Part shown: piece by piece, positions 1,121 to 57,300 of the stretch
Layout of the letters: every line of letters begins with the position of its first letter
How positions within the stretch are numbered: the stretch's first letter is position 1
NCBI GenBank assembly: GCA_002269645.1
Contig: NIVC01000293.1
Span: 434,001 to 498,000 of the forward strand
DNA from: Macrostomum lignano
Lineage: Eukaryota
Length of the DNA stretch: 64,000 nucleotides
Reading direction: 5' to 3'
The notes under the pieces: generated by a model
Databases searched by the model: none
What the model saw: the letters and a program-made list of their open reading frames with translations, nothing else
Told to the model about the DNA's origin: nothing
Made by a program: the position numbers and the translations under genes

Positions 1121-1389
1121 AAAATAAATATAATGCTCAAGCATTAAGACTGGAGACACTGAAATTGTCTTGACATTGACAGCAGCACTTGATGCTGTAA
1201 CACAGGCGTGCTATAAATATAGGGGTGCAGACTTATGGCACCTCAGTGGATTGATGACATCTGAGTGCCAGAAATAGATGTGCAATTGTTTTGTGATTGG
1301 TTTGGCATGATAAAACTTGATTAGACTAGATTGTAAAGCAATGAGACTAGACTCACATAGACATGTCTCTAGTGAGACTAAATTCATAT

Positions 1390-2490
1390 AGACACAGAGA
1401 TACTTTAGATCCATATTGACACAGTGAGACTAGATCCAATATTGACACAGTGAGACTAGATCCATATTGACACAGTGAGACTAGATCCAATATTGACACA
1501 GTGAGACTAGATCCAATATTGACACAGTGAGACTAGATCCAATGTTGACACAGTGAGACTAGATCCAATATTGACACAGTGAGACTAGATCCAATATTGA
1601 CACAGTGAGACTAGATCCAATATTGACACAGTGAGACTAGATCCAATATTGACACAGTGAGACTAGATCCAATATTGACACAGTGAAATTAGATCCAATA
1701 TAGATCACAGTAAGACTGGATCCATAAAGACACAGTGAGATTAGACCCATATAGACACAGTGAGACTAGATCCAATAAAAACATAGTGAGATTAGATCCT
1801 TATAGACACGGTGAGGCTGGATCAAATATAGACACAGTGAGATTTGATCCAATATAGACACAGTGAAACTAGATCAAATATAGACACAATGAGACTAGAT
1901 CCAATATAGACACAATGAGACTAGATCCAATATAGACACAATGAGACTAGATACTAATAGACACAGTGAGATTAGATCCTTATAGACACGGTGAGACTAG
2001 ATCCAATATAGATAACAGTGGGACAAGATCCAATATAGATAACAGTGAGACTAGATCCATGTAGACACAGTGAAATTAGATCCAATATAGATCACAGTGA
2101 GACTGGATCCATAAAGACACAGTGAGATTAGATCCAATATAGATCACAGTGAGACTAGATCCAATAAAAACATAGTGAGATTAGATCCTTATAGACACGG
2201 TGAGGCTGGATCAAATATAGACACAGTGAGATTTGATCCAATATAGACACAGTGAAACTAGATCAAATATAGACACAATGAGACTAGATACTAATAGACA
2301 CAGTGAGATTAGATCCTTATAGACACGGTGAGACTAGATCCAATATAGATAACAGTGAGACAAGATCCAATATAGACACGGTGAGATTAGACCCAATATA
2401 GACACGGTGAGACTAGATCTATATAGACAGTGAGACTAGATCCAATATACACACAGTGAGACTAGATCCGCAGTGAGACTAGATCTATAC
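1390..2490. repeat. ~26-bp minisatellite (GACACAGTGAGACTAGATCCAATATT)n, ~40 copies
   Basis: Direct reading. The array begins ~15 nt into the intron that follows the THAP exon. Confidence 0.95.
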
Positions 2491-2505
2491 AGAAAGCCGC
2501 CTCAC

Positions 2506-2664
2506 CTGGCTAACAATGGTGTCTTCAGTTCGGCCGATGGCCTCCAGCCACCGCTCCCGCAGTACGGCGGGTTTCTTTGGCACCCGATAAAAATGTCTAT
2601 TGTCGTCCGAACCTCGGTATCTCGAACGGAATTTGCAATTCGGAAATCCGCAAGTTGTCGGCAT
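2506..2664 (-). CDS. First coding exon (53 codons) of a THAP zinc-finger gene, THAP-CtBP (C. elegans CTBP-1)-like; remaining exons not found in the window
   Basis: ATG at 2664 gives MPTTCGFPNCKFRSRYRGSDDNRHFYRVPKKPAVLRERWLEAIGRTEDTIVSQ, with the THAP CxxxxC, P and W signature. It ends at a canonical CAG|GTGAG donor (2506/2505), before the final C..H ligands. Confidence 0.85.
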
Positions 2665-3049
2665 GTTGGGGGGAGGGAGGGGGCTGTTTGAAGATGCTGG
2701 ATATTGATGAGGAGGAGATAGGATAGATCTCGCTCGGGCTCCCAAATCTGTGCTTTTAGGCACCAAGGATGTAAAGGAAGGTTTGAGCATGATTGGCTAG
2801 GGAGACAAGGCACCTGTTGCAGTGTCCCCAGGAGCGGTGGCGAAGGCGGGTGCATCCAATCTGCGGTCTCACAACCGAAGCCAAAAACCCTGCCATGCGT
2901 GTATCTTGCCTGTTCAGAAAGCGATCAACTGACCTGGTCTCCTGCCCCGCCCAAAAATCTCTTAGATGTATATTTATGGTCTTGTCCAATGGGGGCCCGG
3001 CATTACCTGGCCGTGTTCAAGATATTAACCGTTCGAAGAGATGTTTATA

Positions 3050-3502
3050 GCGCCCCTAGGATAGCAATGGCGCCCCTAGGATAGCGATGGCGCCCCTAGG
3101 ATAGCAATGGCGCCCCTAGGATAGCAATGGCACCCCTAGGATAGCAATGGCGCCCCTAGGATAGCAATGGCACCCCTAGGATAGCAATGGCGCCCCCTAG
3201 GATAGCAATGGCACCCCCTAGGATAGCAATGGCGCCCCTAGGATAGCAATGGCACCCCCTAGGATAGCAATGGCGCCCCTAGGATAGCAATGGCACCCCT
3301 AGGATAGTAATGGCACCCCCTAGGATAGCAATGGCGCCCCTATGATCTTTATGGCGCCCCTAGGATAGCGATGGCGCCCCTAATATAGCAATGGCGCCCC
3401 TAGGATAGCGATGGCGCCCCTAATATAGCAATGGCGCCCCTAGGATAGCAATGGCACCCTAGGATAGCAATGGCGCCCCTAAGGATCTCGATGGCGCCCC
3501 TA
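3050..3502. repeat. 20-bp minisatellite (ATGGCGCCCCTAGGATAGCA)n, ~22 copies
   Basis: Direct reading. Each unit contains the palindromes GGCGCC and CCTAGG. Confidence 0.95.
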
Positions 3503-4027
3503 TATTCTTTAACTATTCTTGTTTACTGACTGTCCACGTCTGCAGTTACCACACCAAAATATTTATTAAGACCGAGTTTTGATTTTTATATGTTTAGAAA
3601 ACTCCAAGGCACTACTCAAAATCGAAATTCTAACGCAATACTTGTTTTTAGCTACAAACGATCCACAGCATCTTCCCCTAATTTCCTATTTCATTATCCT
3701 CGAACGCAGATCCCAAACGTGACCTCCCAGGGGTTGATGCAGAATTTCATATTGAAAAAAGCACACACTCCAACAGCCAGTCGTGATTTATAGTAGCATC
3801 GAGACTCGGGATAAATATGGAATATACAAACGAGATCGACTCCCAGAGGCGCCAGGTGCAGCATGGAAGATGTTTGCTAATTAAAGGATTAAAGATAAAT
3901 ACGTTATAGACGAGACAATAATTAGCATGCACTACAGATTGAGCGTAAATGGGTAATCCATCCATATAGTGTTGAGTTTATAATCAGTGCTAAGTTTATA
4001 ATTAGTACGAAAGTTATAAAAAATTTA

Positions 4028-4255
4028 GGGTTTTGGCGCCTGAGAATCCGTGGTTTTGACGCTTAAGAATCTGTGGTTTTAACGCATGAGAATCCGTGGT
4101 TTTGACGCATGAGAATTTGTGGTTTTGGCGCCTGAGAATTTGTGGTTTTGGCGCCTGAGAATCTGTGGTTTTGGCGCCTGAGAATTTGTGGTTTTGGCGC
4201 CTGAGAATCTGTGGTTTTGGCGCCTGAGAATTTGTGGTTTTGGCGCCTGAGAATT
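4028..4255. repeat. 23-bp minisatellite (GGTTTTGGCGCCTGAGAATTTGT)n, ~10 copies
   Basis: Direct reading. Confidence 0.95.
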
Positions 4256-4619
4256 AATGGCTCCAAGGTTTCCAATGTTTTACTAAATCAAAAATGAATT
4301 ATATACTTCAGAATAAGTCAACGAAAAATGATCATGCAACCCCACAGATTCTCATAAAAGTTCAGTATGAAAAAATAATTTACAGAGCCACTACCGTCTA
4401 TTTACACGAGCGAAATAGCAAGCTCGCTTTTGTGAGTTCAAGATTAGCTTCAGCTCTGGCATATTTTAGGCTCGTAAAAAGTAACGAATGGAAAAATTAT
4501 TTTCATTCGAAGTAAACGATATAATCCTGGGGGGAGATTTTCTAGGGTGGTTTATCGAGAGGCAGATAATCTAGGAGAAGATTGTCTGGGCAGATTCTCA
4601 AGGGGAAGATTCGCAAGAG

Positions 4620-5340
4620 TGATATTCTCAAGCTTGAGATTCTCAATGGGAAGTCTCAAGGGTGAGATCCTCAAGAGCGATATCCTCTAGGGGAAGAGTC
4701 CCATTGAGGTCCCATAGACATCTCGATTTTAAGGTTGTGATTCTCAATGGAAAGAGTCTTAAAGCTGAGATTCGCAAGGGTGAGATTCTCAATGGAAAGA
4801 GTCTTAAAGCTGAGATTCGCAAGGGTGAGATTCTCAATGGAAAGAGTCTTAAAGCTGAGATTCGCAAGGGTGAGATTCTCAATGGAAAGAGTCTTAAAGC
4901 TGAGATTCGCAAGGGTGAGATTCTCAATGGAAAGAGTCTTAAAGCTGAGATTCGCAAGGGTGAGATTCTCAATGGAAAGAGTCTTAAAGCTGAGATTCGC
5001 AAGGGTGAGATTCTCAGGGGTGAGATCCTCAAAGGCAAGAGTCTCCAGGTTGAGATTCTCAAAGGCAAGAGTGTCAAGGGTGAGATTCTCAAAGGCAAGA
5101 GTGTCAAGGGTGAGACTCTCAAAGGCAAGAGTGTCAAGGGTGAGATCCTCAAAGGCAAGAGTCTCCAGGTTGAGATTCTCAAAGGCAAGAGTGTCAAGGG
5201 TGAGATCCTCAAAGGCAAGAGTCTCCAGGTTGAGATTCTTAAAGGCAAGAGTGTCAAGGGTGAGATTTTCAAAGGCAAGAGTCTCCAAGTTGAGATTCTC
5301 AAAGGCAAGACTGTCAAGGGTGAGATTTTCAAGAGTGAGA
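4620..5340. repeat. 15-bp-monomer minisatellite with 45-, 30- and 60-bp higher-order units (AAGGGTGAGATTCTC-type)
   Basis: Direct reading. It explains four overlapping repeat ORFs on both strands. Confidence 0.93.
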
Positions 5341-5784
5341 CCCCGAAAAAGTTGATTTGCGAAAATCTTGAAAAAACAAAGAAGAAACACCTTTTTTTTG
5401 CTAAAAATTTTAAGCAAACGATGAACTCGCATCGCAGACAGCAGGCCACAGTAGTGAAACACACGGAGTGTTAAGTAGTAAATACTACAGTAGTTTATCA
5501 GCACATTTAGTTTTTTTATTTGCAAATACAATCACAAAAAGTAACTCACTTATTTAGTTAAGTGATAAGGCAGGTTAAAGCTGCATGACAATCGTGCAGA
5601 TTCCGGAAAATATACGACAAGACAAAATCATTAAGTGCCGTGCATACGCAAAAGTTTTTATTTAAAGAACGAAAATACTCGGCAAAGACAAATATTAGCA
5701 GCTTAAAAATGAGTAGCCTAAGCTGAACCAGAACTAAAGCTACTGCCAAAACTTTGATGCAGCTTTTCTAAGAAATCAAAGAGT

Positions 5785-6100
5785 TTCTAAGAAAATAGAT
5801 TTTTCCGCCTCAGTTTCTAAGAAAGTGGATTCTTCCATCTCAGTTTCTAAGAAAGTGGATTCTTCCATCTCAGTTTCTAAGAAAGTGGATTATTCCATCT
5901 CAGTTTCTAAGAAATTGGATTCTTCCATTTCAGTTTCTAAGAAAGTGGATTCTTCAATCTCAGTTTCTAAGAAAGTGGATTCTTCCGTCTCAGTTTCTAA
6001 GAAAATGGATTCTTCCATTTCAGTTTCTAAGAAAGTGGATTCCTACATGCCAATATTTAGGAAAACTGATTGTATTATCTCCATTTTTAATTATTTTTTC
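5785..6100. repeat. Degenerate 30-bp array (CTCAGTTTCTAAGAAAGTGGATTCTTCCAT)n, same family as the large satellite
   Basis: Unit aligns with the 10435-26150 satellite in the same orientation and lies just 3' of the snurportin stop. Confidence 0.9.
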
Positions 6101-6197
6101 GAAAGTCAAAGCAAGAAAAAAAATATTTATAAAACTGAAACACTGAATAATCACACCGGATCATATAATTCGAACAGTTCAATAGAAAAATTGAAAA

Positions 6198-26776
<20,579 letters not shown>

Positions 26777-27316
26777 GAAATTCAAGCAACGTGAGGCAAT
26801 CTCAATAGCTTCTTTGCATGATTAAACTACCAACCAAGCTGAGTTGTCAGCAATTCAACAATCAGTCTACGAAACTATTCGATAAGAACTAACAAAAGTA
26901 CGGTTCTAATATATATATATTTTAAAATCACAATAAAGTAAATATATAACGGTTTCTTTATTCCTATCCTACACAATTATAATCATAGATTACAGAAGAC
27001 AATCAAATTGAAAAAAAGCAACAATGACGAATGAAAGTCCAAACTTCCTGTCAGGAACTAGCTAGCATATATCTCAAGATTTATTTACAATTCCTGTTTG
27101 AACAACAATTTTAAAGCATTTTAATCATTACGTTGTGCCACTGCAACAAGCGATCAATAGATTTCTTCATGCCTTATTTTGATGTCAGTGTTAAATCACC
27201 GAAACTTTAATACCTTTTACCAGTTAAACCAATGCTGTTTTGCAGATGTTTCAGAACAAAATGCCGTCATCAAGTGTTTTAAAGACTACTGGATAGTTTA
27301 AAAAGCAACTATAGAC

Positions 27317-29209
27317 TTAGGCAATCTTCTCAGCTACAGCCTGTACAAACACTCGATCAGCTCGAACACCTCCCCGCCTATTAATTGTCTCCCTTAGCAC
27401 GTAGCAGCACTGCAGCACTCGCAGACCGGCACCTTGGCACAGCGATTCCAACTCTTCAACAGTGAAGAAATACGAACAGGTGCCGTCCTGACGCACGTAG
27501 CGCGACTCGGCTAGCTTGGTGCCTCGACCAAACCTCAGCTGGCAGTGGTCGTGCAAGCCGTAGTCTCTAATTAACAATCGACCACCCGAGCACAACAGTG
27601 CTGCGGCATTAGCAACTGCGGTTGGCATTTCCGCGGGTTTAATAGCCGACAGTACAAACACCATAGCGGCTAAGTGAACGCTGCTTTCATTCCAATCGTC
27701 CAGATGCCCAGCAGCCAACAAGACAAAATCAGACGAAGTTAAATCGGCGCAGAATGCTTTGAACCGATTGTCATTCTCGTCAGTTCGTTCTCGTTGCCAA
27801 CGTTGCACAGCCATGTTCACTGCCCGAGGAGAGAAATCGCAAGCCAACAATCGCAGATTGGGCAGCTCAGCTAGCAGCGGCATGGCAAAGTTGCCAACGC
27901 CGCAGCCCAGCTCAGCCAGGATCAGCGGCTGGTCGCCACTATCGTTTTGCATACCAGCCAGCTCTACAAACTCCCTCTTAGTCCAATGCCGATCGCGAAA
28001 GAATCTATCGCCATTGCGATTGTAGAATTTGTCCCAATTGCGCTGCACCTCTGAGTCAATTTTATTGGCACGAAAATCGTTCACTAGTTGCTGACTGGAC
28101 AGCAACTGTTGCTCCGTTTCTGTCAGCGGACGAGGATCGCGGGTTTTATTCTGGAAAGATGACTCGTCATCAGCTTGGTCTTTTTGATGGTCATCAGCTT
28201 CGGCCTCTGTTGGTGATGATGTCTCGCGAGTCTGGTTCTCAGAAGGCGTCTCAATCTGGACATCAGTCTGACTAGAGTCAATCTCTTTCTCTCTATGCTG
28301 GTCGGCAGCATCAGCCTCCCTTACTGATGTAGATTCGCGAGTCTGAATCTGGAAAGATTCATCGTGTTCCTCATCATCAGAATCATGACAATCATCGCTA
28401 TGCTCTCCGCCCAGCTGCTCCTCTAACTCCTTGGCCAGCTCTCCATATGACAGGCGCCTACGGTTATCACTTTCGGCGGCCAAACTAGCAAGATGACGCG
28501 ACTGCACTTCCTTAACATCATTAGCATCGCGACAAGCAGCATAGGCGTCTAACAAGTCGGCATTGAGCTGACGAAATGCTTCACCCCAGCCGAATCTTGA
28601 TAGCACAATATCGGCATCGGAGTCCAATCCCACTATGGATAACCCAGCAGCGAATGCTTCTACGCAAGACAGATTAATCGGCTTGCCATAATTGACAGGA
28701 TTAGCAGCTACCAAGTAAGGAAGCAGTCGTTCATTGTGACACTTCATACGCGACCAGGGAGTCGATTGCAACTGTGCCCAGGAGCAATCCACTACGGCTA
28801 GGCCTCCCCGACGAACGATTTCGGCATCGGCTGGAGAAATCTGCTCCGTAGCAACTGGCGTCAAAACTACGCCGCCAAAACGACTACCAAGTCGAAGTTC
28901 CGACACTAATCCCAGTCGGGTCAGACGACGTCCGGTGCACTTTTTCGGATCGCAATGACCTAGATCCCACATTGCTAAGGGTATGGAAAGCTTCGATTGA
29001 TTCAAATCTTCGTCGCTACTCTTGACATTGTCGGATGCAGCTGTTGCGCCTGCAATTCTATGCGCTAAGCCTTCATTATCACTGCCATTGTCAGTTTTGT
29101 CGTGTCGGTAAACCCGTCTGTCCCGATTCTGAGCTCGTTTCTGCTCAGAGGCTTTGCGTTTTCCAGCGGCGGTATTCTTTGATCTATTGCCGCGTTTCTT
29201 ATTGTCCAT
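27317..29209 (-). CDS. Intronless fusion protein (630 aa): N-terminal TSR3 18S rRNA aminocarboxypropyltransferase, acidic linker, C-terminal METTL6-type tRNA m3C methyltransferase
   Basis: TSR3 motifs: LAMWDLGHCDPKKCTG, DCSW, LLPYLVAANPVNYGKP..LSCVEAFAA, FGWG. METTL6 motifs: NWDKFY..FFRDRHWTKREF, ELGCGVGN, ACDFSPRAV, FVLSAI, RDYG, YVRQDGTCSYFF, RVFVQ. One uninterrupted frame. Confidence 0.93.
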   Translation of the reverse strand: MDNKKRGNRSKNTAAGKRKASEQKRAQNRDRRVYRHDKTDNGSDNEGLAHRIAGATAASDNVKSSDEDLNQSKLSIPLAMWDLGHCDPKKCTGRRLTRLGLVSELRLGSRFGGVVLTPVATEQISPADAEIVRRGGLAVVDCSWAQLQSTPWSRMKCHNERLLPYLVAANPVNYGKPINLSCVEAFAAGLSIVGLDSDADIVLSRFGWGEAFRQLNADLLDAYAACRDANDVKEVQSRHLASLAAESDNRRRLSYGELAKELEEQLGGEHSDDCHDSDDEEHDESFQIQTRESTSVREADAADQHREKEIDSSQTDVQIETPSENQTRETSSPTEAEADDHQKDQADDESSFQNKTRDPRPLTETEQQLLSSQQLVNDFRANKIDSEVQRNWDKFYNRNGDRFFRDRHWTKREFVELAGMQNDSGDQPLILAELGCGVGNFAMPLLAELPNLRLLACDFSPRAVNMAVQRWQRERTDENDNRFKAFCADLTSSDFVLLAAGHLDDWNESSVHLAAMVFVLSAIKPAEMPTAVANAAALLCSGGRLLIRDYGLHDHCQLRFGRGTKLAESRYVRQDGTCSYFFTVEELESLCQGAGLRVLQCCYVLRETINRRGGVRADRVFVQAVAEKIA

Positions 29210-30942
29210 TGTTGTTGGTTTTTTGATGCTTTGATGCAACAATCAGAAATTTCAAATACGGTCTTAGGTTTAATAAAACTAAAGAAAGTTCATCCATCCA
29301 CCTATACTAATTGTCTAAATCACTATACTAAAAATGAGTTCTTTCTCATACGTTTAATTGTTAGCAAAAACGATTCAACCGATTTTTACTTAACTTGCAC
29401 CGTTCGATCAGGAATCTTTAGGATTCACCACCTTGTGACCTGTCATGGGAATCAATAATTTTGCTTCAGGCGCCAAAATATAGCGTCTTCGGGGCCAAGA
29501 TAAGCGCCTCTCTGCGACGCAAAAATGAGTTGCCTGCCTGCGGCGCCAAAATTTGCCGCTTTCAATTGTTTTGTCTATGGCCAAGCCTATAGCCTAGCAG
29601 TGGATCAAAATACTATAGTGGAGCTAGCTGAACAACTTAATAATTGCTTTTTACGCTCATACTACTGAACAGAGAGTACTTTTGCTACTCTCTACTTTGA
29701 ACAGAGAGTGTCTACTAAAAATGGTTTGAGTCAAGCTAATTATATAGTTACCATTTGTACGAGTATGTGTATTATTCCACCACACTGACATAACCAATTA
29801 GCACTCGAAATTAAAATTGTGAAAAAAAAACTATTTGGCCTATCCTACTTACTCTTGCTTTAAAGGCAATAAACGCTAATCTCACTACTGAATAGATAAT
29901 AGATTATAGCAAATGAGTAGCATATGTAAGTGCTACTAATGAGACCTATACTAACGTTACCATATGATTTACTAAAAAAACAGAAAGATAAAATAAATAA
30001 CTCAGTTTATATTTTTGCAGATAGATTTGTGCACATTATATATTGTATATGCAAATGGCAGTTAACACGAATGCGTAACACGTTTAACATTAACTGTCAT
30101 CGATTTAAACAATTCCTGACAACAGTAGAATAACAGAGATTAAATTTTCGTTCTGGATACACTGGCTCGCCCATATCGCTGCCTGAGAAAGATTTACAAA
30201 GGAAATAGTAGGCATAATTACATAAGTACACATACTTTGTGTGTATAAGAGAAGAGAAGAGTGTAAAACCTAACGATTATTTTGCTACTAAAAGTATTCA
30301 GTAAGTATATATATGCCTATATGTATAACCGCACTCGTTTGAATTTCAAAGTCCAATTACTTGAAGCACCGCAATGAACAAAACGTTTTGTGTCGATTAG
30401 CTATTCATATTTTTGAGTCTGAAGTGAGTATACGAGTATGTACCAGCAATCTATGCCTAATTAATAGAAATGATTTAAACTCACAACAAACAATAAATAA
30501 GCCTGATATATTGCTGATATAAACAAAATGAATTAATGTGGGCAGATGAGAGCAGCTCAGACGACGCGCATCAGGCTCTGGCTCAGGAAGTATTGTATTT
30601 CCCATTGATAAAAACCCTAATGAGTCTACTTGAGTAAGTAGAAAGTTAAGAGCTAACACAACAAATCTTCTACAACTCAAGAAGTGATGCACTCGTGACT
30701 CAAGCGTCGCCCCAGTTTACAATGACTCTTTAAGCGAATCTTGTCACGATAACGTTTTACGTTCAATAACGTTTAATTTTCAACTAAATGTTAGGAGCAC
30801 AAAAATTATTTCAGCTTTTAACTACTAAAAGAAAGTAGTATAGTGTGTTAGGGCTAATTTAAATTTCAGTTGTTTTCAACGAACTTTTCGGGTGTACATG
30901 AACTAATCAGTATTGACACGCATTTCAGCAGACTGCAAGCCG

Positions 30943-33900
30943 TCACAACCAAGCTACAACAACAGTCACATTATCGGTTGACCCGGCAGCCACAGCCATA
31001 TCAATCAGAGCATTAGCAGCTGCAGCTTCGCTCTTAGTTGAGTCATCAGCTTGCATAGCAACTAGCGCGGCGGCTGCATCGTTAGGCGCCACAGCGTCCC
31101 ACAGCCCATCGCTAGCCAGCACTACGCAGACATCTTTACTTCCGTCTGCATCTTCGCTGAGTTTCAATTGCCGATGCACGACTTCCGGTTCAGGTGTTGA
31201 TCCTGTAACTCCGCGATCGCCCAGACTGCGAGTGACAGCCAGCACGCCATTCAGTCTTGGCGGGTTGCCGTCCATCACGAAGCCGCCAGCAGATTCCACT
31301 CGGCTACGCTCAGCCGGGATGCTGGGCCTATGCGGCGGCGCTGTCAGCTGGGTTGCTAGGCCGTTGCTATGCACTAGCCAGGCTTCCGAGTCGCCAGCCC
31401 AGGCTACAGTTAACTGATCACCGGATATGATGCACACCTGATTTTAAGAGTGAAGACATTATACTTAGATGTTTAATCCGCTACCAGCAGTTAGGGATCC
31501 CAACTTAGGATGCAACATTTCAAACAGAAAAGGATTTGCGGGGATATTTGGGATTATATAACCATTTGTATGGATATCTGAGATTACGTAGGGACGCTTG
31601 GCATTATATAGGGATTTTTAGGGATATCTGGGATTACATACGGATTTTGGGGGACATTTGGGATTAGATAGGGATTTGTAGGGATGTTTGGAAGTAGATG
31701 GGATGGGATATTTGGGGTTAGATAGGGATTCTTAGGATATTTGGGATTAGATACGGATTTGTAGGGATATTTGGGATTAGATACGGATTTGTAGGGATTT
31801 TTGGGATTAGGATGGATATCGGGGATAAGATAGGGATTGTAGGGATATTTGGGATTAGATACGGATTTTTAGGGATTTTTGGGATTAGGATGGATATCGG
31901 GGATAAGATAGGGATTGTAGGGATATTTGGGATTAGATAGGAATTTGTGAGGACATTTGAGATTAGGGGATTTGTAGAATATAATTAGGATTAGACAGGG
32001 ATTTGTGGGGATATTTGGGATTAGATACGGATTTGTAGGGATATTTGGGATTAGATAGGGAATTGTAGGGATATTTGGGATCAGGATGAATATCGGGATA
32101 TCGGAGATTACCATAAGAAAAACACTGAAGTATTTCCCCACAGTTGGGACACAAATAAAATTTTCATGCCCCTAACAAACCGTGCAAGTGGCTCCGCCCG
32201 ATGCTCCGCATTGGCTAGCGGCTTCGCCCAATTTCGCGTCGGCATCGACAAACGTTCGACGAAGTCTTTCAACCAATTCTGACTTGCTATCAGAGTCGCT
32301 ATGAGAAGAATAAGACAGGAACAATGGCAGCAGATAGGAAGCGGCCAAGTCGGCTCCGTCGCTGCCGCCGTGACCGTCCAGAACGGCCAAGAAATTCGCC
32401 TGGCTATTGGCGTCCGGCGAGAATGCCGACACCAATAGGCGATCTTCATTGCGTCGGCCGCGATTTTTTGCGCTTGCCTGTTTGTTTGACGAGTTTGAGA
32501 GACTTTTCTTTCATAATTTAATCTCTAGTCCAATTCTTATGCTTGTTTGGGATACTGTCTGAACCTCTGTTCTACCCCAGTTTGATCATCTGTTCTACCC
32601 CAATTCGATCATCTGTTCTACCCCAATTTGATCATCTGTTCTACCCCAATTTGATCACCTGTTCTACCCCAATTCGATACTCTGTTCTACCCCAATTTGA
32701 TCATCTGTTCTACCCCAATTTGATCATCTGTTCTACCCCAATTTGATCACCTGTTCTACCCCAATTCGATACTCTGTTCTACCCCAATTCGATACTCTGT
32801 TCTACCCCAATTCGATACTCTGTTCTACCCCAATTCGATACTCTGTTCTACCCCAATTTGATCATCTGTTCTACCCCAATTTGATCATCTGTTCTACCCC
32901 AATTCGATCATCTGTTCTACCCCAATTTGATCATCTGTTCTACCCCAATTTGATCATCTGTTCTAACCCAATTTGATCCTCTGTTCTACCCCAATTCGAT
33001 CATCTGTTCTACCCCAATTTGATCATCTGTTCTACCCCAATTCGATACTCTGTTCTACCCCAATTTGATCATCTGTTCTACCCCAATTTGATCATCTGTT
33101 CTACCCCAATTCGATACTCTGTTCTACCCCAATTTGATCATCTGTTCTACCCCAATTTGATCACCTGTTCTACCCCAATTCGATCATCTGTTCTACCCCA
33201 ATTTGATCATCTGTTCTACCCCAATTCGATACTCTGTTCTACCCCAATTTGATCACCTGTTCTACCCCAATTTGATCATCTGTTCTACCCCAATTTGATC
33301 ATCTGTTCTACCCCAATTCGATACTCTGTTCTACCCCAATTCGATACTCTGTTCTACCCCAATTTGATCATCTGTTCTACCCTATTTTGGTCATCTGTTG
33401 TACCCCGATTTGATCATCTGTTTTCCCCATTTTAATATGTTATCGATCATAGATCCATTCTATATTTTTCCATATCCAATCGCTTGTTTACAGATATTCT
33501 GTTCTACAGCTCTCTAATTAATAATTACCAACGCACAAAACCGAAGGCTCACATGAGACACAAGCCAAGCGCAGCCACGCCTAACCACTGTTGGCGCATC
33601 AACACTATCATGTCTGGGCGTTGCCTTATCGCCATTATCATCATCATTGCTACTAATGTTTCTTTCTTCCATGTCTCCAAGGCAACTGCGTAATTTCTCT
33701 TTGGCATCACAGTCAGCCAGCTCGCGAACAACTTCGCCAACTAATCTCTGAACAGCTCGATACTCAGGCTTAGCAGTTTCATTTTCTTGGCTAATAAAGC
33801 GATTAGTGAACTGAGATCCAAGCAAATATTGCATTAGCTTAGCTTGAGCTCTCCAACCCATTGTTAAATCATTATTGGCATCGGATTGCACTACTTGCAA

Positions 33901-34445: not shown

Positions 34446-36259
34446 TCTTAAACAAGCAAACACATTTAATATTTGTTCAATTTCATATATATTTTGCATT
34501 AACTAATCTGTAGCCTAGAATCTCCAACTAATAATACTAAAAATGAAAACTTCGCCAACTAAAACTAGGAAAACAAAAAATATTATTTACTTCACAAAAC
34601 ATATGCTTAGCTTGGCTTGTTAATAAATGATTATTGAGACTAAAATAAGTAAATATGCTTTAAAAATAAAAGTACATTGTGGCAACCTAATCAGTGTGCA
34701 GCCAGTTTAGAAGGTGCACTTGCACTAAAACTAAAGTATTTGACCTACTATATTGGGATAGGTGCACTCAGTCTAACATAGTTTGCTTAGCTAGAGGTTG
34801 GCTTTTCTTATGCCACTATTTTGCATACCATTTTAAAAGGCCAGTAAACCATGCAATATTCTATAATATATATACTAGCTAAAGTAATCACCAAGGTTGC
34901 ATAACTAAGTAAAGTAAACTAACTAAACTAACTAACTAAATCCAACTAAAGTGCTTTACTAATAGGTAAATTATGAGGAGCATGTCTATATGATGGCTAT
35001 AATAGAGGTCTACCTAGAAAAAGCAGATATCTTCATTAGCATTAGCCTATCCATATCAACAATCACTTGCCACTTTGGAGAAATAGCCATTGATATTATG
35101 TGTAGTCAACACATAAGAAACACTTAAGATGCTAAATTGTCATCTTCTTCCATAGCTTTATATTTTTAATTATAATCTATAACCATTATTTAATATTTAT
35201 AACATTTTTAAATATTTTTAATTATTAAAATACCTTCAAAATATTGATTTTTTAATTAAAAATTGGATTAAGTAGAAATATTTATTAAAACAAGGCATGA
35301 AAATGTGATCCTAATAATGTCCATTCCATCTAATCTAATTTAAATATACTAGATCTCTAATCTATGTCTGTCTGTCTGTCTGTAAAACGCTCTACAGACT
35401 GCAATTCTTGACCAATTTTGATCGCGTTTTCACCAAAAAGTTGCAACTCAACCAAGGATTGTATGGTTAACATTTCTTTTATCTGCTTCAATTCTAAAGG
35501 TCTTAAATATTCAAAAAACTGTATTTTCCCTATCTAATTAGTGTATTTTTCTCGCAGTGAGAGCTTGAAAAATAATAATACATCTATGGCCATAGACTAC
35601 GAGCTATAAATAATTAAATTATTTGCAAGCTTCAGAGTATGCACGAGAAAGATAAAAATATATTAAATTAATTTTCATTTATTTGTACCCCCTTGTGCCT
35701 GGACTAATCGAACATTTTTGATTAAAAGCAACTATTTTTTATTAATTAGTAATAATTAGCTTTGACTATCAGTTATCCCATCAATTGTTATTGCCTAAGG
35801 TCTAAGAAATTGCTAAAATGCAGACGATGTTGCTAAACTGCTGAAAGTATTGCTAAAAGCTGTGTTGTGCAAAAGATTGCAAAGTTGAAAAACGAAAAAC
35901 TGCTGAGGTAGTTCCTCCAGACTTATAAGTGTATAGCTGCAAACTGCCGATGGGATAACTATCTACAGAGTTTTAGTGGATAATAACTGTGAATGATTAA
36001 TTGCAAGTTTATTGAGGGGATAACTGTATTCTGCTGAGTGAATTATTGTAGTTTGCTGATGTTAATGAAAGTTGTAGATGGCAAAGTGGATATCTGCAGG
36101 CTGTTAATAGTAAGACTGCATTCTGTTTTGTGGGATTAGAAGAGAAGCTACAAGCTACAAGAATTACTGAATTACTGTAGACAAGCAATAACAGGCATAG
36201 GCTAAGCAGATGGTTGGCAGTTGGAGTCTGCATTGAAGCAGCAAATTTATCTGGCTTAC

Positions 36260-36915
36260 TGGGGGAATTGTTGAGATGTCAAGGCTTACTGGGGTAATTG
36301 CTACAATCTCGAGGCTTACTGGACTGGGAGAATTGCGTAGATGCCAAGGCTCGAGTATAATTGCTGCGATGTCAAGGCTTACTGAGGGGATTTCTGAGAT
36401 GTCAAGGCTTAATGGGGTAATTGCTACGATGTCGAGGCTTACTGGGGAAATTTCTGAGATGTCAAGGCTTACTGGGGAAATTGCTGAGATTTCATCAAGG
36501 CTTATGGCATATTGAGCTCCTGCTGTGGACCAGAAAATGCCCAGGCCAATGACGATATGCCCTAAGAGTTTGTGCTTGAAAGGATAAGTACTATTTGCTG
36601 AATGAGAAAGGGTTTTGGGCTGATGAAGGAAACTTTGGCTGGTGAAGGTTTTGATTCATGGCAACTGGGGGAATTGTTGAGTTGTCAAGGCTTACTGGGG
36701 GAATTGCTGAGATTTCAAAGCTTGCTGGGGGGAATTGCTGAGATGTCAAGGCTTACTGGGAGGAATTGCTGAGTTGTCAAGGCTTACTGGGGGAATTGCT
36801 GAGACTTCAAGGCTTACTCGGGGAATTGCTAAGATTTCAAGGCTTGCTGGGGGGAATTGCTGAGATGTCAAGGCTTACTGGGGGAATCACTGAGATGTCA
36901 AGGCTTACTGGGGGT
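36260..36915. repeat. Degenerate 30-bp minisatellite (GAGATGTCAAGGCTTACTGGGGGAATTGCT)n in two blocks
   Basis: Direct reading. Confidence 0.9.
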
Positions 36916-50295: not shown

Positions 50296-50619
50296 ATAAA
50301 TGAGGTCACTTACTACTATTAGTATGTCAAGTTGCGGTTGTACTATCAAATATCGGATTAAGGTTGCTAGCTACTTGTGCATAGCGAATTTATATTGATT
50401 TTTTATAGTCATATCAATGTCCATGTGTCTGTCAGTGTGTGAAATTAAATCAACTCTTGCTTCCACGATTGCGCTTAGTGTTCAGGGTACTGCTAATGTT
50501 TATATCAAGTATCACATGTATCTGTTTTGTTTGTGTTAGTTTGGTTGATTATTTTCTAAATTTAATAAAATTTTGTTACAGATAATTAGGGCGTTTTGAG
50601 TTGCTAAGACTTGTGAATC

Positions 50620-52060
50620 TGAGTATTGGGGATCAGGGAACTGAGTATTTGGGATTGTGAATGTGAGTATTTTAGGATCAGGGACCTGAGTATTTTAGGA
50701 TCAGGGACCTGAGTATTTTAGGATCAGGGACCTGAGTATTTTAGGATCAGGGACCTGAGTATTTTAGGATCAGGGACCTGAGTATTTTAGGATCAGGTAT
50801 CTGAGTATTTGGGATCAGGGATCTGAGTATTTTAGGATCAGGGACCTGAGTATTTGGGATTGTGAATCTGAGTATTTTAGGTTCAGGGATCTGAGTATTT
50901 TAGGATCAGGGACCTGAGTATTTTAGGATCAGGGATCTGAGTATTTTAGGATCAGGGACCTGAGTATTTGGGATTGTGAATCTGAGTATTTTAGGATCAG
51001 GGATCTGAGTATTTGGGATCAGGTATCTGAGTATTTGGGATCAGGGATCTGAGTATTTGGGATTGGGGATCTGAGTATTTGGGATCAGGGATCTGAGTAT
51101 TTGGGATCAGGGATCTGAGTATTTGGGATCAGGGACCTGAGTATTTTAGGATCAGGGACCTGAGTATTTTAGGATCAGGGATCTGAGTATTTTAGGATCA
51201 GGGACCTGAGTATTTTAGGATCAGGGATCTGAGTATTTTAGGATCAGGGACCTGAGTATTTAAGATTGTGAATCTGAGTATTTTAGGATCAGGGATCTGA
51301 GTATTTGGGATCAGGTATCTGAGTATTTGGGATCAGGGATCTGAGTATTTGGGATTGGGGATCTGAGTATTTGGGATCTGGGATCTGAGTATTTGGGATC
51401 AGGGATCTGAGTATTTGGGATCAGGGACCTGAGTATTTTAGGATCAGGGACCTGAGTATTTTAGGATCAGGGACCTGAGTATTTTAGGATCAGGGACCTG
51501 AGTATTTTAGGATCAGGGACCTGAGTATTTTAGGATCAGGGATCTGAGTATTTTAGGATCAGGGACCTGAGTATTTTAGGATCAGGGACCTGAGTATTTT
51601 AGGATCAGGGACCTGAGTATTTTAGGATCAGGGACCTGAGTATTTGGGATTGTGAATCTGAGTATTTTAGGATCAGGGATCTGAGTATTTGGGATCAGGT
51701 ATCTGAGTATTTGGGATCGGGGATCTGAGTATTTGGGATCAGGGATCTGAGTATTTGGGATCAGGGATCTGAGTATTTGGGATCAGGGATCTGAGTATTT
51801 GGGATTGGGGATCTGAGTATTTGGGATTAGGGTTCTGAGTATTTGGGATTAGGGATCTGAGTATTTGGGATTGGGGATCTGAGTATTTGGGATCAGGGAT
51901 CTGAGTATTTGGGATTAGGGATCTGAGTATTTGGGATTGGGGATCTGAGTATTTGGGATCAGGGATCTGAGTATTTGGGATTGGGGATCTGAGTATTTGG
52001 GATCAGGGATCTGAGTATTCAGCATCAAGGATCTGAATGTTTAGGATCATCACGAAATTG
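50620..52060. repeat. 22/23-bp minisatellite (CTGAGTATTTTAGGATCAGGGAC)n, ~62 copies
   Basis: Direct reading. Confidence 0.96.
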
Positions 52061-53384
52061 AATATTTAGAATTAAGGATCCGAGTATTTAAAAGATTTTA
52101 TTTCTTTTAAATTAATCTCACTTTCATTAACATACCTGCTAGTTTGGCCTAATTATTAAAAATGAATTTTTATTCTTTTAAACATGCAGGTCAACATTTT
52201 ATTAACACGCATACCTCTCCGTTTGACTTATTTTTTATCGTAGATGCTGTAAGCAAGCGTGCGGTTGTAGCTTATTAATGTTGTGTACTATTTTTTACAA
52301 GTATAATATTTGTAGTGTAGTAAAAACTATATTTTCAAATTTCTATAAAGAGATTAATGGTAATAATAGATTAATTATTCAAATGCCTGTCCGTTCCTGT
52401 GTTTTTATTCAATTTTTACTGTTTAAAACTAGTCATTTAGAGATTACACAGCTGTAGTTATTAATACTCATACTACCTCACTGGCCATAAGATAATTATC
52501 TCTTAGTTCTTGCTTATTCACCAAGCTTTGGGGGTCCAGCATTTTCAATCATTTTTTTCTGATATAATAAGCTCTGTTCATTGAAATAAGTTTTTTGGTT
52601 TTCCTTTATATATAATACTATTAGTAATACTTACATTTTTGAAACAAAAGTACACAGTCGAATACCTCAGCTCTTCCTACATCCTTTGCACTTTTTTGTC
52701 AGATTTTCAACTGGTGTTTTTATTATCCTACTAATAGTAATTAACATTAACTGCCTCAGTCAGTCAGTGAAATATTTGTTTGTTAACCTGCAGTCGAAAT
52801 TGAGTCAGTCTTTCATTTTTATTGCGTGTCTGTAGATTTTTTCTTAGCTTGAAAGTAATTAGCTTAGCTTAGTTGCATTGTCTCCCATATTTATATTTTC
52901 GTTCAGGTATTTTGGTGCAATATTATTGCTTATTATTATTATTAGTGTTCTCCGTGTGCTGCATAGCAACCCTTTAGATTATTAAAATACAAATATATCA
53001 TATTATAGATTGCCAGTTGCTATTGGCATTTGAATGAAGCAAATTTTCAGTCTATTGAATAGAATTGACTTCTTTCTTTATAATAATTTAAATTATTACG
53101 AAAATAGAATTGTCGATTGCTTTGTATTTATTCGGAGACTTTTTTAACGATTTGAAAATTTCATTTGATTAAGCATTTACCGGTATGTATAGATAGTTAA
53201 TAGAAAGAGTATAAAATTAATTTTAGCAAGATTCTTGCACTGCATGCACTGCACTGCAATGCCGATCAATGCACTTACTCGTAAATTCAAATGCTTATTG
53301 CACGTGGTAGCTGAAACAAATAAGTTTGAAATACAATTTGAAATAAGTGGCAAATAAAATAACATTGACAGGGTGATAGAATGC

Positions 53385-53960
53385 GTTCACGGGGGATAGA
53401 AACCCATTCACAGAGGATATATTCCCATTCACGGGGAAAGAATTCCATTCACAGGGGATAGAATTCCATTCACAGTGGATAGAACTTCATCCACAGAGGA
53501 TAGAATCCAATTCACGAGGGATAGAATCCCATTCACGGGAAGAATTTCATTCACAGGGGAAAGAATTCCATTCACAGGAGATAGAATTCCATTCACAGGA
53601 GATAGAATCCCATTTCACAGAGGATATGATCCCATTCACAGGTGATAGAACCCCATTCACGGGGATAGAATCCCATTCACAGAGGATATAATCCCATTCA
53701 CAGGGGATAGAATCCCATTCACAGAGGATATAATACCATTCGCAAGGGAAAGAATCCCATTCACAGGGGATAGAATCCTATTCACAGGAGATAGATCCCC
53801 ATTCACAGGGCCCGGGATAGAATCATATTCACACAGGATAGAACCCCATTTACAGGGAATAGAACCCCATTCACAGGGGATAGAATCCCATTCACACAGG
53901 ATAGAATCCTATTCACATGGGATATAATCCCATTCACATTTGATAGAATCCCATTCAGCG
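53385..53960. repeat. ~22-bp minisatellite (GATAGAATCCCATTCACAGGGG)n
   Basis: Direct reading. Confidence 0.93.
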
Positions 53961-54316: not shown

Positions 54317-57300
54317 TCATTCGTTCGGATTGAGTTTATAAGCCACCAAAGAGTCCACCTTGTGAATTGAGGTGGTAAACGATTTCAATTTCACTTCGAC
54401 AGAATTGGACACCAGCTGAGGTCCAGTATCGGCCCATTCGCCGCTGGGCAATTCCGTGTTCTTGTCGCAGTAAATTAGCAGTTCAAAACTGCCTGTAATT
54501 TTCAAAAAAAAATCCTTCAGCTTAACAAACTATTTAGTTAAACTCCGAGACAACAAAGCAAATTAAAAAAACGCCAAACTTACACTGGAAATCCAGAGCC
54601 GGCAGAAAGGTTACGCTGGCCACAATTTGGCGGATAACATCGGCGATATCCTTCTTCACTTGCTTCTCGTCTTTCTCTGCCACCATTCTGTTTGATGAAA
54701 AATTGGTTCAAACTACTTACAGTAGATGAGTAGAAATATCGGATTTTTGATTGAAAAAATCACACCGGCTTACTGAAAGTAGTATAAAAGACAACCTCAA
54801 TACTCACGGTTCATCGGACTTAGCAGATTTGTCGCATTTAATGTCGAACTGCCAGCGTTCGACCACTTCCTGGGTGGACACTCGACGAATAACAAGCACC
54901 AGCTTCTCAATCACCAGGTCGCTGAGCCATTCTGAGTGGTTTTTTACAATCAAATCTTTAGGTGTTTATTTCAGGCGTGAAGGACGGAAACATGTACAGT
55001 CATCTCTGGAGTTTTTAGGATCTGGGAGACTGGCCCAGCAACTGAGGAGCTGGGAGGCTGGCCCAGCAACTGAGGATCTGGGAGGCTGGCTTAGCAACTG
55101 GGGATCTGGGAGGCTGGCCCAGCAACTGAGGATCTGGGAGGCTGGCTTAGCAACTGAGGATCTGGGAGGCTGGCCCAGCAACTGAGGATCTGGGAGGCTG
55201 GCCCAGCAACTGAGGATCTGGGAGGCTGGCCCAGCAACTGAGGATCTGGGAGGCTGGCCCAGCAACTGAGGATCTGGCAGGCTGTCTGCCCAGCAACTGA
55301 GGATCTGGGAGGCTGGCCCAGCAACTGAGGATCTGGCAGGCTGTCTGCCCAGCAACTGAGGATCGGGGAGGCTGGCCCAGCAACTGACACTCTGGGAGGC
55401 TGGCCCAGCAGCTGAGGATCTGGGAGGCTGGCCCAGCAACTGAGGATCTGGGAGGCTGGCCCAGCAACTGAGGATCTGGGAGACTGGCCCAGCAGCTGAG
55501 GATCTGGGAGGCTGGCCCAGCAACTGAGGATCTGGCAGGCTGGCCCAGCAACTGAGGATCTGGGAGGCTGTCCTAGTAACTGAGGATCTGGGAGGCTAGA
55601 ACAGCAACAGAGGATCTGGGAGGCTGGCCCAGCAACTGAGGATCTGGGAGGCTGGCCCAGCAACTGAGGATCTGGCAGGCTGTCTGCCCAGCAACTGAGG
55701 ATCTGGGAGGCTGGCCCAGCAACTGAGGATCTGGCAGGCTGTCTGCCCAGCAACTGAGGATCGGGGAGGCTGGCCCAGCAACTGACACTCTGGGAGGCTG
55801 GCCCAGCAGCTGAGGATCTGGGAGGCTGGCCCAGCAACTGAGGATCGGGGAGGCTGGCCCAGCAACTGAGGATCTGGGAGGCGAGTGCCACAGCAACTGA
55901 GGATCTGGGAGGCTGGCCCAGCAACTGAGGATCTGGGAGGCTGGCCCAGCAACTGAGGATCTGGGAGGCTGGCCCAGCAACTGAGGATCTGGCAGGCTGG
56001 CCCAGCAACTGAGGATCTGGGAGGCTGTCCTAGCAACTGAGGATCTGGGGTGGGGTGCTCAACAACAAAACTTGGGGTGACAGTTGATCTATTCGATACA
56101 GCTAGAAGTAACTCACGCTTCACTTGTTCCAATATCTTGATCAAATAGGCCTTAAGCTTCTCATCCGATGTCACAAGAACGGTGAGGCCATACTTCTGCT
56201 CAAACGAAAAGGATTCGCTTGGATAAATGCCACGTTGGTAAAGGATGGAATTCACCGCATAATCTAAAATGATTTAAGAAAGTTTGGGCAAGGATGCAAT
56301 ATTTATTGACATTTTTGCATCAAATTCAAAAATCTTTAAAAGTTAAACATTATGAGCAAAAGAAATATGATTACTCTACACACAAGAATAGGCTATAGAC
56401 ATTGCTTCAATACCCATCCCACAGCAATGCTTGAAAGTTCATTTAGTCTGATTAGCAGATTCTTATTTTCAGCAGTTAAATACCAAGTTATAAGAAATTT
56501 CTCAAGGCTATGAAATGCTACACAGAAGTTGAATGAGAGTAAAAGCAGATGGAAGAAGCAAAAAGCAAAAAACAAGCAGCTCTAGCTTGAGTCCCAGCCT
56601 CTACAAATGAAATTTAGATGCAGAAAGATAATAAAAATTTATATTGTTTCTGTCAGTTTTGAATAGGATATGGAAAATTGGAGCAATGCTATGGACTTCT
56701 TTACCCTGTGGTAGGATCTCTGCCTTCTAAAGGCGATTTCTTAGATTCTGATCTGGATATCTCGTTCTTCTGAGAATGGTTTGAACTCTCCCAATCTTGG
56801 GTTATTCCTAAGTCACTGTAACTATCTACTACTCAAAATAAGTAACACGAGTGATTACAAGCCCAGAGCTGATCAGATTTTATCTGCAAAATAAGCAGGT
56901 AAGCACAATCAAAGCTTGAACCCAAAGGCAAGGAAGAAGTTTTTTTTGGTCAGGCCCCCAGATGGCCCCTATTTATAATAAAATTTCATTACAGTTTTAA
57001 ACAAATGATTGTATAGAAATATACAAAATATACAAAATATTTCTAGTAGTTTTCAAATTTTACAAATTTCTAAGAAATTTAAAAGTGTGTTTACTAAAAA
57101 CAAAGCCTATTACTTATTTAATAATCTTATTTCACTTTTCAGCCTATCTGCTAAACCAACAATGGTTGGCAGACCCAGGGCACTTACAACAATCATATTA
57201 GCAGCCAATCTAAGGCTACCCTAATGATCCCACAATGTATACTAATATACCATTGAGGGGCTATAAGCACATGTGGAGGACAAATTCTAGAGGATGTGTG

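Follow-up and report, generated by a model that had tools for sequence, protein, structure and literature searches.

Two RNA-modifying enzymes, TSR3 and METTL6, are encoded as one continuous frame in the flatworm Macrostomum lignano. The DNA analyzed here, referred to as the window, is a stretch of 64,000 nucleotides from contig NIVC01000293.1 (assembly GCA_002269645.1, positions 434,001 to 498,000 of the forward strand), and the fusion gene within it is free of introns. The same architecture is present in parasitic flatworms, where the gene is split into several exons. We consider it likely, at a probability of roughly 78%, that the gene specifies a constitutive bifunctional enzyme of about 70 kDa, produced from one mRNA, and that the fusion arose before Macrostomorpha and Neodermata split. 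What we infer are both enzymatic activities, that the protein is made, and how the genes came to be fused.

Results

A single frame for two enzymes

The fusion gene occupies the minus strand, where an open reading frame (ORF) runs uninterrupted from 29209 to 27317 and comprises 630 codons followed by the stop TAA at 27317-27319 (Table 1). The ORF listing extends the frame to 27317..29242 on the minus strand (641 amino acids, aa) by way of an upstream TTG, and the first ATG is that at 29209. An earlier annotation made from the letters of the window, here called the sequence-only reading, had described a single intronless 630-codon frame holding TSR3 and METTL6, and the ORF listing, Pfam, and a search of sequences in the PDB all agree with it. 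The locus that it gave, 27317-29209, was right in position and needed one correction, namely, that the gene is on the minus strand.

The sequence-only reading also held that the METTL6 half lacks its own start codon and that neither a stop nor a Met occurs from the linker to beyond the sequence RHWTKREF. Indeed, Met residues fall at positions 1, 80, 155, 420, 443, 466, 516, and 528 of the fusion protein and nowhere across 156-419, and between the end of TSR3 and the close of RHWTKREF (aa 407-414), the frame contains neither Met nor stop. With no Met in frame across 156-419, METTL6 is not separately startable. Moreover, M420 is replaced by Arg in a second type of the protein in M. lignano. An AlphaFold 2 (AF2) model of the protein contains two confident domains, with predicted local distance difference test (pLDDT) scores of 75-96 over most of aa 72-252 and 351-630 and a predicted template modeling score of 0.47.

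The first of these domains was expected to be a complete TSR3 module, and two Pfam families matched in full length bear this out. Fer4_RLI (PF04068) lies at aa 77-109 (E 1.6e-14; 53.8 bits against a cut-off of 23), and Ribo_biogen_C (PF04034) lies at aa 114-239 (E 4.2e-49; 165.9 bits against a cut-off of 29.9; profile positions 1-126 of 127). Archaeal Tsr3 proteins were matched in the PDB sequence search (5ap8, E 1e-24; 5apg, E 9e-23), and Foldseek aligned the AF2 model to 5ap8 with a template modeling (TM) score of 0.83-0.85 and a root mean square deviation (rmsd) of 2.5-3.0 Å. At the level of the overall fold match, the predicted structure has the SPOUT-like knotted fold of Tsr3. Almost all of the source-named proteins among the best 120 matches to the N-terminal half are called TSR3 or 18S rRNA aminocarboxypropyltransferase, and all matches carry both PF04068 and PF04034. 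The N-terminal half is thus assigned by sequence as an orthologue of TSR3 and not of the DTWD/TapT enzymes, which transfer the aminocarboxypropyl (acp) group to tRNA. Finally, basic N termini have been described for eukaryotic TSR3 (Burroughs & Aravind 2014, PMC4275035), and aa 1-71 of the fusion protein are likewise rich in Lys and Arg.

The second domain had been called a METTL6-type module, a description that a near full-length match to human METTL6 supports. Class-I methyltransferase models of Pfam cover aa 428-600. In the PDB sequence search, residues 347-624 of the query matched nearly the whole chain of human METTL6 (8owx/8p7b/7ezg/7f1e; E 6e-63), such that the homology spans human residues from about 6-10 to about 264, and Foldseek aligned the AF2 model to chain 8p7b_A with a TM score of 0.89 and an rmsd of 2.9 Å. 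METTL6 was the only protein among the PDB sequence hits for the C-terminal half, and nearly all source-named proteins among its best 120 matches are METTL6 or METTL6-like. By these comparisons the C-terminal half, within the m3C methyltransferase family IPR026113, is closest to METTL6 and not to METTL2 or METTL8. The best stand-alone METTL6 relative, P0133, is 50% identical (262 bits) and is the product of an intronless 299-aa gene on short marine contigs (Tara Oceans and others; L007-L009). As it comes from marine metagenome contigs of eukaryotic origin, P0133 has no bearing on flatworms.

Conservation of functional residues

Residues known to matter in TSR3 have counterparts in the fusion protein. 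In Tsr3, an Asp or Glu is the proposed catalytic base, and a Trp buries the methyl group of S-adenosylmethionine (SAM) and so directs transfer of the acp group (Meyer et al. 2016, PMC4872110). Alignment to Vulcanisaeta Tsr3 (5apg) equates D141 with VdD70/ScE111, W144 with VdW73/ScW114, and T92 with VdT19/ScS62 and places L116 and P118 at the positions that pack against adenine. Across 19 aligned fused proteins, D141 and W144 are invariant, position 92 is Thr or Ser, and L116 and P118 are conserved.

Residues known to matter in METTL6 are retained as well. The sequences NWDKFY (aa 391-396) and FFRDRHW (aa 403-409) correspond to the motifs WDLFYK and FFKDRHW, which have assigned roles in the RNA-binding domain specific to 3-methylcytidine (m3C) enzymes (PMC11479938). 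Alignment to human METTL6 equates F379 with F32, R398 with R51, and D549-Y550 with D189-Y190, and F32 and R51 are contacts to seryl-tRNA synthetase (SerRS) that are exclusive to enzymes targeting cytosolic tRNA-Ser (Throll et al. 2024, PMC11479938). Among the fused proteins, position 379 is Phe in 16 of 19, Tyr in 2, and Asp in 1; R398 is present in all 19. The N, W, F, and Y of NWDxFY and the FF, D, R, H, and W of FF(K/R)DRHW are invariant, as are the SAM-binding sequence GCGVGN, D458, and D489, and D549-Y550 is conserved.

One module could in principle be dead or repurposed, for example, as an adaptor that binds RNA or SerRS, with the housekeeping activity coming from a separate stand-alone gene. 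Stand-alone paralogues are possible given that searches with each half of the protein were uninformative (see Discussion), and the METTL6 halves of neodermatans carry large lineage-specific insertions after motif I. Nevertheless, the known SAM-binding, catalytic, and substrate-contact residues of both enzymes are invariant or conservatively substituted in the 19 fused proteins, which represent four lineages. In addition, no flatworm stand-alone TSR3 or METTL6 was found among the best 120 matches of three protein searches or among the ten best single-domain representatives, which are from insects, a crinoid, sharks, fungi, and environmental sequences. We think it quite unlikely that either module has lost its activity.

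The segment between the modules

What joins the two enzymes is TSR3's own acidic C-terminal tail and not new sequence. The segment has pLDDT scores of <50 at aa 253-259 and 267-350, and Asp and Glu make up about 29-30% of it. Six stand-alone TSR3s, with 26-41% Asp plus Glu over their final 100 residues, align to the acidic segment, and HMMER alignments of mollusc and echinoderm TSR3 continue through it as far as query residue 348-388. Stand-alone eukaryotic TSR3 has been described as ending in an acidic tail (Burroughs & Aravind 2014, PMC4275035), which is ~100-130 residues long. By these alignments the fusion protein is essentially a whole TSR3 minus its stop codon followed by METTL6 minus its first few residues. 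Yeast Tsr3 tolerates the loss of up to 76 C-terminal residues (PMC4872110), and such a tolerance fits the tail being a passive tether.

The sequence-only reading had seen a linker of ~100 aa, acidic and with internal echoes. Its acidity and the first pair of echoes stand; the third echo is weak or marginal by shuffling (p 0.02-0.1), and the notion of the linker as a new segment does not hold. The first pair is a degenerate duplication of aa 281-315 and 319-351 that scored 53, compared with 29.4 +/- 4.8 on average after shuffling (p about 5e-4), and both arms share the DNA 11-mer CAGACTCGCGA. None of the other flatworm proteins in the alignment of fused proteins has the duplication, and the linker is poorly conserved among them in sequence and length.

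The fusion in other flatworms

The fused architecture was found in 26 named flatworm species from Macrostomorpha, Monogenea, Cestoda, and Trematoda. A word-indexed protein search supplied 23 of these, and the other three, Fasciolopsis buski, Schistosoma japonicum, and Anoplocephala perfoliata, came from cluster look-ups. When 1.84 billion (1.84e9) representative proteins were scanned exhaustively with phmmer, six two-domain hits were returned, four from named flatworms and two (P0010 and P0029) from contigs of sequencing runs; these two group with flatworm sequences. The five fused hits other than that of M. lignano scored 244-431 bits, and all other proteins of the top 150 are single-domain, with ≤262 bits. 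A well-conserved fusion elsewhere would rank near the top of such a scan; very divergent ones could escape it. The two-domain proteins P0021 (UniParc/MetaClust) and P0029 (Logan SRR33002330) share 67% identity, and in a neighbor-joining tree both fall, with weak support, beside the monogenean Cichlidogyrus. Since the fusion occurs in both Macrostomorpha and Neodermata, it predates their split.

How the fusion gene is built in neodermatans was determined by mapping four genes, which have about 2-7 introns over 3.6-21 kb. At least seven exon blocks were mapped over ~21 kb in Schistosoma guineensis, eight over ~17 kb in F. buski, five over 3.6 kb in Mesocestoides corti, and three over 5.3 kb in Cichlidogyrus casuarinus. 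In all four, an intron lies 43-59 codons 5' of NWDxFY, and this junction-near intron is within about 0-16 codons of the start of METTL6 homology. Stand-alone METTL6 of Lingula has no intron at the equivalent position. Introns of ~32-50 nucleotides (nt) were seen in the TSR3 part at 3087-3120 of L002 (S. guineensis) and at 2099-2149 and 3967-4014 of L006 (F. buski), alongside others that are kilobases long.

The junction is also crossed by RNA. The Logan contig L004, of 2,641 nt, holds an uninterrupted fused ORF of 628 aa and aligns to the F. buski gene (L006) as at least six exon blocks. Because it maps as exon blocks, L004 represents a spliced mRNA of a fasciolid trematode that crosses the TSR3-METTL6 junction. 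Contig L003, from another species, has one genomic-looking exon across the junction.

Short forms of the protein are also annotated in Schistosoma, namely, P0129-P0131 of S. japonicum (470-475 aa) and P0030 of S. rodhaini (439 aa). All stop soon after the sequence FVLSA with a few unrelated residues and lack the last METTL6 exon, including RDYG, and P0030 additionally skips the exon that encodes WDxFY and FFKDRHW. We considered whether they are products of TSR3 only or of METTL6 only and rejected the idea, as they are truncated in the last METTL6 exon. If real, they would be forms of TSR3 with a dead methyltransferase; if not, they would be annotation artifacts.

A fused ORF need not yield a fused enzyme. 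The protein might be split after translation by proteolysis of the linker, or the halves might be separated by internal trans-splicing or by initiation at a non-AUG codon, such that the fusion serves as a device for coexpression only. Flatworms, including M. lignano, use spliced-leader trans-splicing, which counts in favor of separation, and the linker, besides being long and disordered, is poorly conserved; yeast Tsr3 also remains functional when its C terminus is shortened as described above. The METTL6 half is nevertheless poorly placed to be made alone. No Met is in frame across 156-419, Arg takes the place of Met 420 in the second M. lignano type, and the essential RNA-binding element of METTL6 (aa 364-414) is upstream of Met 420. 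Moreover, the trematode transcript is continuous across the junction, and neither a protease site nor an acceptor site was identified in support of separation. We therefore regard separate products as unlikely and favor one polypeptide with both enzymes.

Origin of the intronless gene

The fusion gene is not confined to one locus in M. lignano. The protein is 99% identical to PAA71245.1, and at least two further loci in GCA_002269645.1 (L001 and L013) likewise carry this ORF, intact and without introns. The gene order PP2C, fusion, snurportin-1 is common to the window and to both of these loci, and we conclude that we are dealing with syntenic duplicates or haplotigs and not with dispersed retrocopies. 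Two protein types differ at 7 residues, and the window protein is identical to P0123 (630 aa) wherever the two align. When the window protein was looked up by its exact sequence, no recorded gene was found, and only the 7-residue variant P0001 and members of its cluster were returned. Between types, 12-13 of 1,893 nt of the ORF differ (0.6-0.7%), with 6 synonymous and 6-7 nonsynonymous codons, whereas the surrounding 4-5 kb, ORF included, is 96.6-96.7% identical between copies (~3.3% divergence). The divergence of the ORF is below that of its flanks, and thus the whole frame, linker included, is constrained.

These copies bear on whether the fused ORF could be an artifact of assembly or sequencing, such as a chimeric join or a stop or indel hidden in the linker. 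The window is extremely repeat rich, and M. lignano assemblies hold duplicated haplotigs. The identical frame, however, is found on three contigs from two sequence sources, the ORF is free of satellite, and a junction-spanning exon in L003 and spliced transcripts are known from other flatworms. With an intact frame at three loci and low divergence of the ORF, we take an assembly artifact to be ruled out for practical purposes, its probability being negligible.

How the gene came to lack introns is a separate matter. The sequence-only reading had suggested that the fusion was formed by retroposition, on the grounds that neighboring genes have introns, and the introns of PP2C and snurportin were confirmed. 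On that account, a retrocopy would have inserted in frame beside another gene in Macrostomum itself. The gene has 0 introns at three M. lignano loci and multi-exon orthologues elsewhere, as a retrogene would, and an intact long interspersed nuclear element (LINE) with reverse transcriptase and RNase H lies 2 kb away and is a sign of reverse transcriptase activity in the genome. A local origin is contradicted, however, by the multi-exon fusion gene of Monogenea, Cestoda, and Trematoda, which has the same domain order and the same junction. Other marks of a retrogene are missing, in that the three copies are syntenic rather than dispersed and no remnant of a poly(A) tract can be seen beyond the 3' untranslated region (UTR), target-site duplications not having been searched for. 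No intron-containing parent copy was found among the M. lignano loci recovered, a set short of the whole genome. Since the fusion predates the split of Macrostomorpha and Neodermata, retroposition did not create it and explains at most the loss of introns in Macrostomum; that it made the fusion is very improbable. The intronless state could reflect intron loss mediated by reverse transcriptase or an ancient retrocopy that replaced the parent gene.

Other features of the window

Table 1. Coordinates of the fusion gene, its parts, and neighboring features in the window
Feature	Coordinates	Strand	Basis
Complete intronless coding sequence, TSR3-METTL6 fusion	27317..29209	-	ORF listing; 99% identity to PAA71245.1
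Basic N-terminal region, predicted disordered, aa 1-71	28997..29209	-	AF2 pLDDT <50; K/R-rich
TSR3 core, aa 77-239, module for SAM-derived acp transfer to rRNA (by homology)	28493..28981	-	PF04068 and PF04034 full length; 5ap8/5apg matches
DCSW motif, aa 141-144 (D141, putative catalytic base; W144, putative SAM-methyl shield)	28778..28789	-	Alignment to 5apg
Acidic disordered segment, aa 253-350, native TSR3 C-terminal tail, now interdomain linker	28160..28453	-	pLDDT, composition
Degenerate internal duplication, aa 281-315 versus 319-351	28157..28369	-	Shuffle test; shared 11-mer
METTL6 module, aa 351-630, predicted class-I SAM methyltransferase plus m3C-specific RNA-binding domain	27320..28159	-	PDB search, Foldseek
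N-terminal element of m3C RNA-binding domain, aa 364-414, including F379 and R398	27968..28120	-	Alignment to 8owx
SAM-binding motif I GCGVGN, aa 435-440	27890..27907	-	Invariant in 19/19 fused proteins
Candidate AATAAA polyadenylation signal, ~230 nt 3' of the stop	27080..27085	-	Direct sequence reading
Snurportin-1 first coding exon, downstream neighbor	26195..26785	-	Pfam PF11538 and PF21974
Retrotransposon ORFs	20384-21502, 21502-22074, 22308-22979, 22877-25318	+	ORF listing

Repeats surround the fusion gene. A 30-bp minisatellite, AAGAAACTGAATTCTTCCATCTCAATTTCT, is present in 319 copies with a 98% match over 9.6 kb at 10432-20028, and smaller blocks lie at 25413-26145 and 5782-6042. The minisatellite is inside the first intron of snurportin-1, and the array is only ~1.6 kb in L001 and L013; with arrays of 9.6 kb and ~1.6 kb, minisatellite length thus differs greatly between M. 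lignano copies. A 166-aa repeat ORF at 25364-25864 on the minus strand was rejected as a gene, being the 30-bp satellite read in frame. Further minisatellites with units of 14-48 bp are found at 438-9732, 31532-33433, 36253-36914, 50617-52049, 53363-53957, 55017-56049, and 61593-63465; examples are a 20-bp unit repeated 120 times at 7331-9732, a 22-bp unit repeated 64 times at 50617-52049, and a 28-bp unit repeated 36 times at 55017-56049. The minisatellite arrays account for the pronounced GC and AT skews seen locally when base composition is profiled along the window.

Within the 30-bp satellite is a GC-rich (0.53-0.59) non-long terminal repeat retrotransposon of 5.4 kb at 20029-25412. Its intact 813-aa ORF matches reverse transcriptase (PF00078, E 2e-30) and RNase H (PF00075, E 7e-13). 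The element is missing from the equivalent site in L001 and L013, and the LINE insertion is therefore polymorphic and possibly recent.

Discussion

How the fusion protein would work can be proposed from its parts. A single mRNA would give one polypeptide of ~70 kDa with two independently folding, SAM-dependent RNA-modifying enzymes. By homology, the N-terminal TSR3 would transfer the acp group of SAM to N3 of the m1-pseudouridine beside the P site in 18S rRNA, a step in late cytoplasmic maturation of the 40S subunit, and would release methylthioadenosine. The C-terminal METTL6, again by homology, would methylate N3 of C32 in cytosolic tRNA-Ser and release S-adenosylhomocysteine, and its substrate would be selected by SerRS. 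The disordered acidic tail of TSR3 would tether the two modules.

How the fusion arose may be read from gene structure in relatives. The fusion would date back at least to the common ancestor of Macrostomorpha and Neodermata and most likely came about by merger of adjacent genes on the same strand. An intron may then have formed from the TSR3 stop codon, the DNA between the genes, and the 5' end of METTL6, with a 3' splice site possibly derived from a former trans-splice acceptor. All introns would have been lost later in Macrostomum.

Several points weigh against this account. A read-through origin from adjacent genes is something that we infer from intron position only, and TSR3 and METTL6 are on different contigs in Nucella and, as judged from contig size, in Lingula, the two outgroups in which their location is visible. 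The age of the fusion is only bracketed, in that no planarian, catenulid, or gastrotrich sequence was recognized among the matches. Searches with each half of the protein returned, among the best 120 each, orthologues of other phyla only, and they also missed the parent protein of M. lignano itself, making the absence of flatworm stand-alone genes uninformative; the full-length query, unlike the half-length queries, did return flatworm fusions. Finally, the ratio of nonsynonymous to synonymous changes among M. lignano copies (6-7 to 6) comes from very few differences.

The fusion protein resembles each of its stand-alone relatives. Like TSR3 of yeast, human, and archaea (5ap8/5apg), it has both Pfam domains, the predicted fold, the SAM-contacting Leu, Pro, and Trp, and the catalytic Asp, and like eukaryotic TSR3, it has a basic N terminus and an acidic C-terminal tail. 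Unlike stand-alone TSR3, it has no stop after the acidic tail but continues into a second enzyme, and the tail includes a duplication specific to Macrostomum. Like METTL6 of human and Trm141 of Schizosaccharomyces pombe, it retains WDxFY, FFKDRHW, the SerRS contacts F32 and R51, motif I, and D189/Y190. Unlike METTL6, it lacks a separate initiator Met and 5' end, and it carries the small substitutions K43R, K50N, and K58R. In the human METTL6 complex, the N terminus lies beside the helix that contacts SerRS; in the fusion, that N terminus is covalently bound to TSR3.

The protein is closest to the fusions of parasitic flatworms (Schistosoma, Fasciola, Clonorchis, Mesocestoides, and Cichlidogyrus), with which it shares domain order, the logic of the junction, and 38-44% full-length identity. 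Macrostomum differs from them in being intronless, in having a tail of about 100 aa compared to about 25-100 aa, and in being without the large insertions after motif I of trematodes and cestodes. Automatic annotation calls the parasite proteins "18S rRNA aminocarboxypropyltransferase" or "methyltransferase-like protein 6," and names are inconsistent across databases: entries in UniProt and NCBI that carry both Pfam sets are TSR3 in some species and METTL6 in others.

Whether the fusion is new depends on where one looks. The sequence-only reading knew of no described fusion, and with respect to the literature this holds; our searches on TSR3, METTL6, and flatworms returned reviews and primary enzyme papers and no description of it. 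With respect to databases it fails, as flatworm entries already carry both domain sets, and the architecture is widespread at that level, in the 26 flatworm species. A 2014 survey of TSR3 domain architectures lists a fusion to Noc2, a ribosome-assembly factor, in Nosema bombycis and does not list METTL6 (Burroughs & Aravind 2014, PMC4275035). Our scan also returned singleton chimeras, namely, TSR3 with SET/PR (P0165), TSR3 with an eIF2D winged-helix domain (P0218), and METTL6 with CDP-alcohol phosphatidyltransferase (P0260), which are probably merged gene models. The Noc2, SET, and eIF2D cases are each limited to a single species or a single sequence and may all be merged gene models, whereas the METTL6 fusion is clade-wide and supported by a transcript. 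We conclude that what is new is an undescribed architecture and a possible coupling, and not a class of enzyme.

Why two enzymes of the translation apparatus would be joined invites speculation. Both modifications are near the anticodon or the P site, and the enzymes are well understood singly, with no link between them in the literature searched. Perhaps the fusion is a "Rosetta stone" that signals a real functional coupling of TSR3 and METTL6, an idea that we find rather unlikely and nonetheless worth stating. If true, METTL6, together with SerRS and tRNA-Ser, would be tethered to TSR3 and could link methylation of the tRNA-Ser anticodon loop to the last, cytoplasmic step in the maturation of the 40S subunit. 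Another possibility is that one enzyme is delivered to the substrate of the other. Either way, a TSR3-METTL6 or SerRS-pre-40S interaction may exist unrecognized in other eukaryotes. If the fusion is instead merely a neutral merger of neighboring genes, it would be an ordinary case of domain accretion.

The retention of the fusion in flatworms, whether free-living or parasitic, and of two active sites that are intact as far as sequence can tell, suggests that the two enzymes can work as one polypeptide. The fusion is a candidate rare genomic change that may mark Rhabditophora or Platyhelminthes, and its bifunctional architecture is concealed by inconsistent automatic naming. Ultimately, the gene would offer a single knockdown target for two modifications of the translation apparatus in schistosomes, liver flukes, and tapeworms and in the transgenic model M. 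lignano.

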